A stretch of 63,769 bases of DNA, counting the filler, from Choristocarpus tenellus KU-1152 (Eukaryota; Protista; Phaeophyceae), in assembly GCA_964200185.2 (NCBI GenBank). It is 14 parts of 14 records of this genome, joined end to end, with 100 filler letters (N's around TTAATTAATTAA, not from the genome) between each part and the next. Parts side by side here need not be neighbours in the genome. Positions count along the whole stretch, not along the records: positions 12,313 to 18,254 come from CAXNAD020009353.1; 13 more parts are not named here. One strand, given 5' to 3'. A model generated the notes under the pieces. That model saw only the letters and a list, made by a program, of their open reading frames with translations, ran no database searches and was not told where the DNA came from. Below are positions 12,131-18,355 of the stretch, one piece after another; the stretch's first letter is position 1; each line of letters starts with the position of its first letter. The position numbers and the translations under genes are program-made.

Positions 12131-12319
12131 GTGAGACCCCCCCCCCCTGTTCATCCTGAAAATAATAATAAAAATAATAACAATAATGCTACCCTTTGTT
12201 GTGTATATCCTTNNNNNNNNNNNNNNNNNNNNNNNNNNNNNNNNNNNNNNNNNNNNTTAATTAATTAANNNNNNNNNNNNNNNNNNNNNNNNNNNNNNNN
12301 NNNNNNNNNNNNGACTCAC

Positions 12320-12657
12320 CGTTGACCGTGCTTTGCTGGGGGGGGGGGGGGGGGGGGGGGGTTGGCACATGCAAACTGCACAACTCGTAGTTCTCCATGG
12401 TGTTGAAGATTCTCATGCTGTGCTCTCACTTCGATTGATTTGAGTACACTGAAAGCATTTACCCCAAGTCGATCAACACCCATAAATTATTTCGATTCAC
12501 AGCACTGTTCGTTTCTCTTTCTTTCTCAAACACCCACCTTCTCAGGACTTTGACCTTGCGCCCACTTTGCTCCTCTGCATACCCTTGCATCCGTCCCGGG
12601 TCCATCTTTAACTGCCTTTGCAGGAACACGTGATCGCCAATGCAGAAGGCATCCGAC
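12320..12657 (-). CDS. Exons of an unknown minus-strand gene (~12657-12538, ~12449-12320; further candidate exons up to ~14845)
   Basis: Donors AG|GTGGGT and G|GTGAGT and acceptor TTTCAG. Open frames SDAFCIGDHVFLQRQLKMDPGR... and SVLKSIEVRAQHENLQHH...; no family recognised. Confidence 0.35.
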
Positions 12658-15452
12658 TTCAGATGGCAAAAACTTAGGTGTGAGAATAGCGCAATAATGT
12701 ACACTCTAAACGTGGTTGTTGTAGTCGGTAGCATGTCCCCCCCCAAAAAATTATGTTGTTTGGTGGTGGAAGGTTGCGAGAGGTTTGAAGTTCTACACTC
12801 TCTATCCCTTGATGGTTTCTTTCATATTTTGCTGGATTTGCGGGGGAATAGGAAGGGGAGTGTGTTTATCTTAGGTCCAAATATGGATGGTTTCTATGTG
12901 ATGAACCTAGGTGTCCTAGGGAGGGGCGTGATTTGGTCATTTGACCATAAGGGACGGAGCTTGTAAAATATTGTACCTGATGCCCCATTTCTGTAGCGCA
13001 AATAAGGGTTGCTCCAGTCAGGAGTTTGTAGATATAGAAGGCGTGTTCATATGAAGGAAGTTGCTGTAATACTGATGGGAGGCATAAGTTCATATTTTAC
13101 CTTAGGGTTACTCGGATATGGCAAACAGTAAACTGTAGCTGTAGGTAGTAGTGGAACAACCAAATCAGATAGTCTAGAAACAACAAGGAATTGAGAAAAA
13201 AAAATGAATTCTGGCATAATGTAGGTAGGTTGGGTAATGGAGTAGGCCCATCTTTTTGTGAGATGGTCACTTGGTCAACAAATCAATGGGTAGCTAACTA
13301 CTGGTAGTCTTACCTGGAGGCCGGCACCTTGTGGAATAGAAGTCACTGCAAGCCAGGCAGTGAACAATAAATATTCCTGTCCATGGGAGCAATGTTGAGA
13401 TCAGGGTTGCGTCTGGGTTTGATAGTCCATTTACCCCCTCCCCCTTTCCCTCCCCCTCCAGCCTTCCCTTGTATGGGATTTTAGGGGTCTAACCATAGGA
13501 TGAAGATCTGTCTCCCCATTTTTCTTCAAGCGTGGCAAATTCAGTATCTCCTAGATCGACTTGGCTGTGGTGGGACAAATATTTTTTGAAGAGAAACATA
13601 GTGCGCACGTTGTAGTTATGAGCATAGGGTTTTGTTTGTGGAGAAGTCCCCGCCCTACCGACTGCCAAGTACCCTGCTATGTTCCTTTGCAGTGCCCAGC
13701 TTATGAATGCTTTCTTCATGAACAACACGCATTTCCCTTGTGCATGGGTCTCTCCTGGTGTGTATTGTTGCCTACATCAGCATGGATTTATGTCGGCAAT
13801 GGTGTCTGCTGTTCGATGCCAGTAGAAGTAGTACTTCTGAGGCGTTTCGATGTGGTCTACACCCATTGCTTGTGTGCCTTGAACTTGCATCTGTACCGCC
13901 TCTTTTTCGCTTCTAACCTTCATTGATTTTTAGTTTAATCTCTTTCAATCCATGCCATTCCTGCCACTCTATGCTGTCTGTGCACATGTTGCTATTCAGA
14001 ACGGAAATGCCATTGGGAATGAAGAAGAGAATGCCTACATTTTTCTCGTGCATTTTCTCCTTAAGGAGTTCGTTGTCCTTGGTAGTATTTGAGGCGACAA
14101 TTTTTTTCATTTTGAAGTTGTACACCACACGAAGACAACCAGGTATCGTTGAAGAACCATTCATGACAATCCTTCATGGGGAGGCAACAAAGGTATGAAG
14201 AAGTTTTGGCAAGCACCTAGTAATAGTGAGTGGTAGCTGTCACTGGTATTTTGCTCAAGTTTATCTTGTCAACGGAATAGCAGAGCAAAAACAGAAGTGG
14301 GAAATTATCCACATCGTGCAGAATCCTGGTCTGTACACCCTCTGCTCACACAGAATATTCCAACAGAAGCGTCCAAGTGAAAAGAAGAGGATTGACAGGG
14401 AGGGCATTGAATAACACGGATATGAGGTGTGTGAAGGAATTGCACATGCACTGTGAAATATCCAAAAAATGTGAGGGAAAAAACAAAATTATACCAGTGC
14501 TATGGTGTAGAGATCAATAAATCTCTGGGGCATCCATATTTACCCACTCAAAGGAAGACTAACGAAGGGCGTCACACTACCTATAGCAACACAGGGAAAT
14601 ACAAAAAAATTACCCAACGCTCTTCCTGTCTCTCCCAACCCTACTTGGTCTAAACATTTTCATGGTTATATTCCTTCCTCCACCACAGCCTTAACTTTTA
14701 CTAATGCATCGTTGTTCATTTTTATTTGTACGTAGGTGTAGTTAGGTTCATCTCTCTCCTCTTTCCAGCTGATGTGTTTGACGACTTGTCTACTTCTCCC
14801 TTGAAGATTCTTGTAATGTTCTTGATGTCGTCTAAACACTGCTACGTACTGACCATAGCAGCACTATCAGCAACTTGGTTACCCTTCCCATTTTCTTTTC
14901 CTTCTTACATCCTTCACACTCCTCAGTGTGGAATAGGAGGTGCTCCCTCCTGTACACTCCATCGAGGAACTCTATCTGCATCACCCATGGAACAGACCCA
15001 CTACTGCCCCCCCTTAACTTAAACTAGTCACATACAATAATAGCTGTATCTGGAGCTTGTTGCAAAAATCGTCGAAAGCTGTTCAGGGTGCTCACAACTT
15101 GTATCCCAATTCGGCCTAGCCAGGGGGAGTAGTAGTGTTCGATGTGTCCTGGGTTAGACCACATCATCAATAATCTGCATAGACCATCAAAACCGGTCTC
15201 TGCCTACCAATTCTCAGGTGGAAAACAGGGGGGGTTGCATCCCCCTAACTCGATGGTGGTTTCAAATTACTGGGTGCTACAGATGGTCCATTCCACCAAT
15301 AGTGGGGTAGTTAGGGATGGGCTGCCAACCACAGGCCTTGGGGACGTTACTGGTCGGTCAGAATTAACGTTTGATTCCATGAAGACATTGATCAATCACC
15401 TTGAACCCTCAGCCCAAACTCCAACTATCTTTTCTTTTATTTGGTCACCCTT

Positions 15453-15850
15453 TTTCCCCAATGGGGCCCTTCCGGGCCATTTTGGCCCCTCTCATCTACA
15501 AACTACATCAAACCAAGTAGTTGATGCCTGCTGTCCATCTATCTGTCTGTAAGTTACCGATACAAGTTCTTGTCTTCGAACGTAGGATTGCTCGCCCATA
15601 CTTCTCCCAAATATCAAAAATCCTAAGAAACATTGATCTCATTCGGACTTGTTCTTTGATTCCCTCTCACGTACGTATTGTATAAAACCAAGCGATTCCT
15701 GCCCTTACAAACTCTTACATACTATGTAGTAGCATCAAATTATTCCTGTGTGCCCATCCATTTATCTGTTTGTATGTGTCAAAATCGGCTCTATTGAGCT
15801 GTGTTTGGCGAGTTGTTTGGAGTTTGAGTCCGATCATTCATCTCACCGAT
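15453..15850 (+). repeat. Left arm of a long degenerate inverted repeat (partner 17520-17986)
   Basis: Blocks CCAATGGGGCC, CATACTTCTCCCAAATATCAAAAATCCT and GAGTTGTTTGGAGTTTGAGTCC match the reverse complement of 17986-17520 in the same order. Confidence 0.6.
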
Positions 15851-16369
15851 TCTTTCGGTCCGTCTCACGTACTAAAACGGAGGTACTGTCCAACCATCCG
15901 TGTCTCTGTGTACGTTACCATTACCAGCTCTCGTCCTCACACCTCATAGAAGTAATAGGTGTAGTTCGTACGTACGTCACATTTCGACGTAATGCCTTGA
16001 CTTCAACATAAGCTACCTCGCACTTAAAGTTGCAAGGAGGAGTCATGGCATACTTTCTCGTCTCCCCCTCTACCTCTCTCTGTCGTACACGTGCAACCTT
16101 TCATTAATTTGACCAGATAAAGCTAAGCGGACGTCTCTAACTACTTCTGCTTCAGAACAAAAAAAATCCCATTTTTTCCCAGTACAGTGTTGGCAGTCGA
16201 CTCTAGGATGAGACCAGTCTTGATTTTTTTTATGGGGTTGCCCAACGAGTTAAACAACAATGAGCATATCAAATGAAAGCTCTGGATCTAAGCTATCACT
16301 GGTGCAAAGGAATGTTTCCGGAATTTTTTTTGGTAAGGTAATTTTAGGTCGTGCTCAACTTATTATAAG

Positions 16370-16575
16370 CCGTGCCTTCCTGATGAGAGCAAGAGAGAAA
16401 GGCTAAACTAGGCAACACACCAGGTTACCGAGGGACTTGGAGGCTCAACGATATTCCACTCTTCCACAGCAAAAACGTTTTGCACCATTTCGAAGACTTC
16501 ATCCATATGGACAAGAAGTGGTTCTTCTTGTGCAAGGATGGACAGAAATACCACCTCTACGACGTCAAGAAGTCT
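16370..16575 (+). pseudogene. Mariner transposase fragment (first-D region)
   Basis: FEDFIHMDKKWFFLCKDGQKYHLYD is homologous to the VHVDEKWFY..KDGQ..YL block of the other mariner copies. Confidence 0.75.
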
Positions 16576-16705
16576 GTTGTCCACTATGACATCCAGGTGT
16601 CCCTTTTTTTCCTTTCCGAAGGCATGTATGATATAGGGTAGAGGGGAAGGCGAGAGCCGTTACTCATGATTATGAATGGACATATATATCTGCCAGCTGT
16701 TGTTG

Positions 16706-16928
16706 ATGTCTTGAAGATTGTTGTATCGTATTGACAACGACTGACAGTAAAGAAAATGCAAGTTTAATTGCTGAAACCTTATGAAAAAACAAGCTAGCTG
16801 CTTGTGTTCAGATTGATAAGGTAGAAAAAAAAATTTACTATGAGGCAAGCTATAGGCAAGCGAATGAATTTCGTTTAATGATAAAAGCTCTATCTGATAA
16901 CTATAAGCTGATTGAAGAATCAATAAAA
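16706..16928 (+). pseudogene. cutA: Bacterial cutA (divalent-cation tolerance protein) pseudogene, Rickettsiaceae-like, 3'-truncated
   Basis: Frame from 16713 reads [71 protein letters not shown], with the CutA LAACVQ and E.RL.IK motifs. One internal TGA and a frameshift just after the ATG. The ATG overlaps an upstream stop (TGATG). No introns; AT-rich. Confidence 0.85.
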
Positions 16929-16930
16929 TT

Positions 16931-17083
16931 CAAAAACATTCTATAGCACGTCTAATCGGCTCTCCTCCAGGGTATGTTGGCTACGATCAAGGAGGCGTTT
17001 TAACTAAATCCATCAGAAGAAGACCATATCAAATTATTCTGTTTGACGAAGTAGAGAAGGCCCATCCAGATATATTTAATATA
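16931..17083 (+). pseudogene. clpB: Bacterial clpB NBD2 fragment, alphaproteobacterial/Rickettsiales-like
   Basis: [51 protein letters not shown] contains the GYVG pore loop and Walker B. It is fused directly to the cutA piece and has no splice sites. Confidence 0.92.
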
Positions 17084-17373
17084 TCAACTATTATAAACGT
17101 TACTTATTATTCGTATTATCTATCTTAATATGCATGTTCTATATAAATAAAATGCATCAATACTTAACTAACAAGAATAGAGAAGAATATTTAAAAAAGA
17201 TTCTTAATTTTAAAACTGAGCTTCAACAGAAAGAGTGGGAAGTCAAATTTAGCAAAGAAAAGGATTTAGAAATAAATTTATTATTTATGAAGTCAGCTCA
17301 GACAATAACAGAGCAAAATGTAGCAAATTCAGAGGCCCGTGAAAGTGATGAAAAAAAAAATCATAGAGATTGA
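17083..17373 (+). pseudogene. AT-rich bacterial-style ORF fragment: TM helix followed by a Lys/Glu coiled coil
   Basis: Reads [56 protein letters not shown]..., with the same AT-rich codon style as the cutA and clpB pieces. Family not recognised. Confidence 0.45.
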
Positions 17374-17519
17374 ATAGATTTTAGGGAAATACTTCTTTAA
17401 ATGATATCGATGGAGAGGTTGATTGTGGAAGCAAATTCGAACATTCATCTCATACTTTGTTCCCTTGAAACTTCATTTTTCGACGGCAAATTAAGGTATT
17501 TAGGTGAGGGTACCAGTGA

Positions 17520-17986
17520 GGTGAAATAGGATGATAAGGTGTTTTAGGACTCAAATCCAAACAACTCACATCGAGATAACTCAATTCTATGGAGCTCGTA
17601 CTGTCACGTACACACAGACAGATAGGCAAACAGAAGAACGGACAGGTGGAAGGACATGAACTGTTTAGTTCTTACACACAATACATTGGTAAGGTCTTAC
17701 ATTTTCTAGGATTTCGATTTTGGAACAAGTAGGTTTGTGAAGCCAATAATTGGTTATAATAAGCATGTACGGAAGAGCGAGTCCTTGCACGGTTTTTCAT
17801 TTTCAGGATTTTTGAAACTTGGGACAAGTATGCAAGAGTACACAGATGGGCCTACACACGAGGATGAGTGCTGGTACTCGTAACATATACGTACAGACAA
17901 ACGGATGGAAGGACAGGAATTACTGGTTTTACATACTATGCATGAAAGAGGGATCCAAAAAGGACTGAGACGGCCCCATCGGAGAA
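17520..17986 (-). repeat. Right arm of the long degenerate inverted repeat (partner 15453-15850)
   Basis: The reverse complement starts TTCTCCGATGGGGCC... and follows the left arm block by block. Confidence 0.6.
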
Positions 17987-18355
17987 TACATAGGTCCCTC
18001 TGAGAGGGACCGGACCCCTCAGGAATTCGCATTGGACAGGGGAGGAGAGGAGGGAGTGTGGGGTAACTCCTTGCATCTTTGCGCATGAGGGAGAATTTTA
18101 TGTCAAAGCAAGATGGGATGTCCAAATCTGACCAGTACATTCAATTCTATAATATATGGAGTAGTAGGACTTTATACTGTCAGTCTAAGAAACAGAGGAT
18201 TCGCAAAATTGAGGATGGAGCGGGACTATGAGGATGGTTGTTTTGCGAAAACGCNNNNNNNNNNNNNNNNNNNNNNNNNNNNNNNNNNNNNNNNNNNNTT
18301 AATTAATTAANNNNNNNNNNNNNNNNNNNNNNNNNNNNNNNNNNNNNNNNNNNNG

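Follow-up and report, generated by a model that had tools for sequence, protein, structure and literature searches.

Inserts of symbiont and organelle DNA have been described in several eukaryotic systems. In the nucleus of Volvox carteri, truncated Rickettsiaceae pieces from unlinked loci lie beside repeats and a transposon (Kawafune et al. 2015, PMC4324946); this insert is closest to a strain other than that found in a living host strain, and is probably non-functional (PMC4324946). Filarial NUWTs are short (mean 434 bp in Onchocerca), mostly non-functional fossils, and they record symbiont replacement (PMC12693587). In numins, or complex NUMT/NUPT, fragments of different replicons are joined with blunt or short-microhomology junctions (Portugez et al. 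2018, PMC6215612). Lastly, the mitogenome of the fern Haplopteris holds degenerated Rickettsiales coding scraps (PMC10027690). For Rickettsiales symbionts other than Wolbachia, we found few documented cases of transfer into a eukaryote in the literature, namely the Volvox nucleus and the fern mitogenome.

In this report, we describe a patch of bacterial DNA in the assembly of Choristocarpus tenellus KU-1152. The window is the whole stretch of 63,769 nucleotides, and the analysis covered its positions 12313-18254. Two sequencing runs, X1 and X2, from one organism and one study, contain the stretch in their contigs, and no RNA run contains it; X1 may be the source of the assembly itself. The patch proper, 16714-17330 (617 bp), consists of three fragments placed end to end with no filler between them. 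It is very probably a non-functional nuclear insertion of endosymbiont DNA, formed by end-joining of fragments of a lysed symbiont and decayed since. The features of the region are as follows.

16094-16340, no strand assigned: high-copy host repeat in the left flank (summed contig depth ~8100 against 16-22 locally, X1)
16450-16602, plus strand: decayed Tc1/mariner-like transposase fragment in the left flank, from ESM-atlas leads
16694-16709, plus strand: putative atpD micro-fragment of 16 nt (all 16 letters agree with the atpD 5' end in L002)
16714-16933, plus strand: cutA fragment from a Rickettsiaceae chromosome (Pfam CutA1, E 6e-6; nucleotide matches; tree)
16934-17082, plus strand: clpB fragment, NBD2 pore-loop to Walker B region (TIGR03346, E 4e-28), in another frame than cutA
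17083-17330, plus strand: internal fragment of an unannotated 438-aa membrane protein from Rickettsiaceae plasmid-type modules (245/251 nt to an intact gene in contig L098)
17331 to about 17410, no strand assigned: AT-rich stretch right of the last identified fragment (GC 0.22-0.40; single-copy depth)
18084-18254, no strand assigned: very high-copy host repeat in the right flank (summed contig depth ~103,000 against 22 locally, X1)

The patch stands out by composition, as a reading of the sequence alone had noted: the GC content of 16660-17400 is 0.31, against 0.45 and 0.43 in the flanks. Six-frame translation reveals a CutA-like, a ClpB NBD2 and a hydrophobic-then-charged stretch, in three reading frames. 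The sequence-only reading had counted four pieces; three of them stand, and the other, an 'operon tail' whose stop overlaps the next ATG (TGATG), is rejected. The ATG at 16706 and cutA are in different frames, the cutA match begins 10 nt into the gene, and no similarity to queD, the upstream gene in relatives, is present in the window upstream of 16714. A different fourth micro-fragment, derived from atpD, is possible at 16694-16709. This segment ends 4 nt before the cutA piece and is the sole 16-mer match in the 5.3 kb of flank, where 0.32 such matches are expected by chance per shuffled flank set; in L002, atpD and cutA share one orientation, with atpD 2.2 kb upstream. On the right, the stretch from 17331 to about 17410 is either host DNA or another bacterial scrap; it has no match in the plasmid collection or in the fetched loci of relatives, and 17325-17520 has none in the plasmid collection. 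Rfam and tRNA scans gave no match.

The cutA piece covers codons ~4-77 of 104; it lacks a start codon and the last ~27 codons, and an internal TGA lies at 16782-16784, so that the earlier description of a cutA without its 3' part and with an internal stop is accurate. Besides the stop, decay is visible as E>K and P>L replacements and as a block of six adjacent changes at 16828-16833, where a T-run has become an A-run; from its pattern, a single micro-inversion or template switch seems a likelier origin of this block than six separate substitutions. The Pfam and NCBIfam matches of the cutA and clpB pieces are far beyond chance. The top four GTDB matches to the cutA piece are all Rickettsiales, comprising two Rickettsiaceae MAGs (78-82% amino acid identity), Ca. 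Megaera venefica (67%) and a further Rickettsiales MAG, and the next matches reach at most 50%. At the nucleotide level, identity is 86% without gaps to the MAGs CBDBTV (L001) and JALZUG (L002), and 88% to the Logan contig L130. In the tree, the piece groups with Rickettsiaceae with a support of 96/98. The gene order in these relatives is atpD, atpC, queD, cutA and an SDF transporter gene, with queD/PTPS overlapping the cutA start by 11 nt in those inspected (L001, L002, L100-L116, L130), and identical cutA proteins are present in marine metagenomes (TARA and others). The sequence-only reading had proposed kinship with Rickettsiaceae and Megaira. The family assignment stands; the nearest relatives are marine Rickettsiaceae MAGs with the same gene order (86-88%) rather than named Megaira, since Ca. 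Megaera venefica matches cutA at only 70% of nucleotides. The genus Megaira is itself broad, with an AAI below 65% between clades (PMC10132079).

Some variation was seen around this operon in the relatives. Two marine metagenome contigs, L113 and L115, encode the same cutA protein with other genes in place of the SDF transporter, a sulfatase in the case of L113. Between atpG and atpD lies a small ORF, tautomerase-like as judged from its N-terminal sequence (L001, 5380-5601; L002, 5416-5628).

The second piece had been described as 51 codons of clpB NBD2, and this is borne out: about 50 codons correspond to residues ~640-689 of E. coli ClpB (641-689 in the PDB ClpB). Pfam assigns it to AAA_2 (E 1e-20), and among NCBIfam models ClpB TIGR03346 outranks ClpA, TssH and ClpK/G. 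In the plasmid collection, its best matches are alphaproteobacterial ClpBs at 76-80%. Plastid clpC and host nuclear genes had been named in advance as sources that would speak against a bacterial origin; neither plastid ClpC nor host Hsp100 gives the best match, and ClpB scores above ClpA/ClpC and Hsp104-type proteins. A viral source was also considered and rejected, the best ClpB matches on viral contigs reaching at most 78% of amino acids. A related query retrieved 120 full-length ClpBs, of which the closest is P0084 (47 of 50 residues, the next having 46), and P0084 pairs with this second-closest protein in the tree (98/95). The contig of P0084 has 33% GC and carries clpB directly after an ATP/ADP translocase gene whose product shares 71% identity with the Ca. 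Megaera polyxenophila translocase; this neighbour marks the contig as that of an intracellular Rickettsiaceae-type bacterium. The clpB piece and P0084 share 80% of nucleotides, and third codon positions account for 13 of 17 shared differences; at such an identity the source of P0084 is a relative of the donor and not the donor itself. A Rickettsiaceae-type origin of the clpB piece is thus supported by its nearest neighbours, 50 residues being too short for a tree. The piece carries A>S and E>K changes at conserved sites. A degenerate ClpB pattern retrieved only unrelated alphaproteobacteria from metagenomes, at 66-72% nucleotide identity.

As for the third piece, it corresponds to residues 171-254 of a 438-aa protein, that is, to the second TM helix and the coiled coil, in agreement with the transmembrane and coiled-coil fragment first described. 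Pfam, a word search and a metagenome scan with its 97-aa ORF gave no match, and HMMER retrieved one protein, P0001 (438 aa, 80% identical, E 4e-35), from which a family of four proteins was obtained. One of their genes, that of P0021 on L098 (Logan SRR26831613), matches the piece at 245 of 251 nt (97.6%), and the gene on L097 at 86%. Genes of the family are flanked by a DnaA_N-domain gene on one side and an NB-ARC/TPR gene on the other, and ParA and HTH genes lie close by. In the plasmid collection, the DnaA_N and NB-ARC/TPR neighbours match only Rickettsia and Ca. Megaera plasmids. From this neighbourhood, we infer that the source of the third piece was a plasmid or a plasmid-like element in integrated form. 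A 26% homolog of the family is annotated on a plasmid of Ca. Trichorickettsia mobilis; P0021 itself has no tblastn match in the plasmid collection. ESM features suggest, as a lead, a degenerate sensor-kinase architecture. Membrane proteins of this sensor-kinase-like type, 438-469 aa long, recur on L097 (676-5411), L098 and L099 (P0001, P0021-P0023, P0144), in a module with DnaA_N, NB-ARC/TPR and HTH proteins on Rickettsiaceae plasmid-type DNA. A Rickettsiaceae origin, claimed at the outset for the patch, therefore held for all three pieces.

The pieces have different source loci. The cutA piece stems from an atp-queD-cutA operon, which in L001 and L002 has no clpB within 8 kb of its cutA; the clpB piece stems from another locus, and the third piece from a plasmid-type module. 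The sequences overlap by 0-2 nt at the cutA/clpB junction and by 0-1 nt at the junction of clpB with the third piece, these ranges depending on the clpB relative used, as the available relatives are 80% identical and the donor sequence is not among them. Blunt or short-overlap junctions of this kind are as expected from end-joining and would fit it. Both inner junctions change the reading frame, so that no fused protein is formed, and a chimeric ORF was rejected on this account. All pieces are cut at both ends, frames are broken and cutA contains a stop; no intact reading frame under selection is found, and the patch is probably non-functional. Over 251 nt polarised against two intact genes, the third piece has two G>A changes and one 3-nt deletion that are specific to the insert, and the intact gene from another sample shows one change of its own in 248 nt. 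Neutral drift since insertion may thus amount to ~1-3%, which would make the event fairly recent.

The flanks fit nuclear DNA rather than an organelle or a bacterium, given that they are gene-poor, contain repeats and have eukaryotic ESM neighbours. The two repeats reach several hundred (16094-16340) and ~4,600 (18084-18254) times the local depth; they match no tRNA or Rfam family and are probably MITE- or SINE-like. The claim that the flanks are transposon DNA stands in part: it is backed by the high-copy repeats and by the Tc1/mariner-like relic at 16450-16602, the latter through ESM leads, and no further transposon support was obtained from the ten other flank ORFs, which have no Pfam match; no host gene was found in the flanks. 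The ESM-atlas neighbours of the relic are eukaryotic and include Transposase_1 and DDE_3 clusters (0.83-0.89), a lead that Pfam, without a transposase match, and the PDB, without any, do not extend; presumably the relic resembles plant- or stramenopile-type mariners. It is bracketed by a 19-nt inverted pair (16056-16074 and 16637-16655), which may represent the element ends.

Longer inverted repeats, internally repetitive and 65-72% alike, lie on either side of the patch (15454-15938 and 17800-17986). They are much older than the insert. Capture of the Pack-MULE type by these bracketing arms is not favoured, as the arms are 65-72% alike and the insert is 1-3% from its source.

In X1, all four junctions lie within a single unitig that covers 16301-18220 at a depth of 22.1 with 0 differences; the unitig of the left flank has a depth of 15.8. 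In X2, where flank depth is 4-9, three unitigs of depth 5.5-6.8 give good cover of the first three junctions and overlap the last, right junction by only 7 letters. Unitig depth is therefore continuous over the junctions at the host single-copy level, with no sign of the coverage break that a chimeric assembly had been expected to leave. No empty-site allele was seen in either run.

The same samples contain an intact cutA, on one contig per run, at a depth of 3015 (X1) and 1917 (X2), or ~140 and ~300 times the local host depth, although contig depth is a rough measure. This resident contig matches 16834-16933 and then continues as intact cutA; the resident Rickettsiaceae belongs to the same marine clade as the cutA relatives. 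Resident and insert differ at 16808, 16814, 16823 and 16893, that is, at 4 of ~64 compared sites outside the block change, and the insert states at these positions occur in other bacterial relatives. For the clpB and plasmid-type pieces, no high-depth contig was found at 85% among the records passing a filter, a result that is not informative on the resident. The resident is thus a near relative of the donor with a non-identical genotype.

Two histories can account for this difference. The resident could be the direct descendant of the donor, the differences having arisen in the symbiont after the transfer and no strain having been replaced. The T at 16889, common to resident and insert alone among nine sequences compared, is what such descent predicts. 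Yet at the four differing positions it is the insert that carries the states of other bacteria and the resident that departs from them, and the intact gene of the third piece, with its one own change, suggests little drift on the bacterial side, even if plasmid and chromosome rates may differ. We consider descent unlikely, if still a serious contender, and strain replacement, in which the resident has taken the place of the donor strain, is clearly favoured over it.

The sequence of events that we propose is the following. A germ-line or clonal host cell would have contained an intracellular Rickettsiaceae bacterium whose lysis freed short DNA pieces (150-250 bp), two from distant chromosomal loci and one of plasmid type, whether from a free plasmid or an integrated plasmid-like element. 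Non-homologous end joining would have ligated these to one another and into a break in a host chromosome, probably in a single event, and the patch would then have drifted neutrally by ~1-3%. The donor would be a close relative of the Rickettsiaceae now abundant in the samples and not of the same genotype. The sequence-only reading had likewise proposed integration of unlinked endosymbiont fragments by end-joining followed by decay; the unlinked sources, the 0-2 nt overlaps and the decay support it.

An RNA intermediate would also produce a mosaic, if a host reverse transcriptase had changed template from one bacterial mRNA fragment to another and its cDNA product had integrated. All three pieces, and the possible atpD 16-mer, do lie in coding orientation, which for three pieces has a chance of 1 in 4. 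Such a route nevertheless seems very improbable to us: no poly(A) follows the third piece, no target-site duplication and no retroelement end was found, and end-joining at the DNA level already accounts for mosaics of this kind (PMC6215612). Pre-assembly of the mosaic in the bacterium, as a decayed, rearranged region or a packaged DNA particle, or its carving by deletions out of one long insert, would imply a single entry. A deletion could leave just such an atpD 16-mer, its source being a co-oriented gene 2.2 kb upstream of cutA in relatives; given that cutA comes from a chromosomal operon, clpB from a locus of its own and the third piece from a plasmid-type module, and that the fetched loci support neither loss of a single essential-type clpB context nor a plasmid-chromosome fusion, this origin is highly improbable.

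An assembly or library chimera of host DNA with the abundant resident deserves mention because Rickettsiaceae stand at 140-300 times host depth in both samples and contigs are the only data. It is hardly credible, and simple contamination is unlikely: the insert differs from the resident cutA, which was accordingly not the template of a chimera, and bears a stop and other decay, while junctions spanned by one unitig in X1 recur piecewise and without differences in X2 at host depth, where a chimera should have the resident's own sequence and should not recur from one sample to the next. That the patch was captured through RNA, or that the host keeps scrambled patches among its repeats as small-RNA templates restraining Rickettsiaceae, the patch being a sequence memory of an earlier strain and not inert debris, is a very remote prospect.

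If insertion of end-joined symbiont fragments is the correct reading, the patch is a small, clean example of the ongoing passage of DNA into a eukaryote from a Rickettsiales symbiont other than Wolbachia. It ties to a host genome a widespread marine Rickettsiaceae lineage known mainly from metagenomes, indicates that chromosomal and plasmid-type DNA entered the host together, and may be the trace of one symbiont strain giving way to another. Such patches also risk being miscalled as contamination or as functional horizontally acquired genes.

Compared with the described systems, the patch resembles the NUWTs in consisting of short, non-functional symbiont fragments, and differs from them in its donor, a member of the Rickettsiaceae and not Wolbachia (Anaplasmataceae), one locus being examined here. 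The fern inserts lie in a mitochondrial genome, whereas the patch is at host single-copy depth with nuclear-type high-copy repeats beside it. The Volvox insert shares with it a Rickettsiaceae donor, truncated unlinked pieces, host repeats, a transposon relic and a closest strain that is not the resident one. In Volvox, however, 16S stands next to murB-ddlB-ftsQ, a syntenic block is kept within ~9 kb, and the insert was confirmed by PCR and lies in symbiont-free strains (PMC4324946); the patch described here measures 617 bp and is made of three scraps of 150-250 bp, including a plasmid-type gene, from a marine donor with a related symbiont in the same samples. In a literature search of incomplete coverage, we came across no description of a symbiont mosaic of this scale that combines chromosome and plasmid; such a mosaic is expected variation and implies no new mechanism or function. 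With numins, the patch shares the end-to-end joining of fragments from different replicons and probably the short inner overlaps, its sources being a bacterial chromosome and plasmid-type DNA instead of mitochondrion and plastid. It works like a numin but is not one, as all of its pieces are bacterial.
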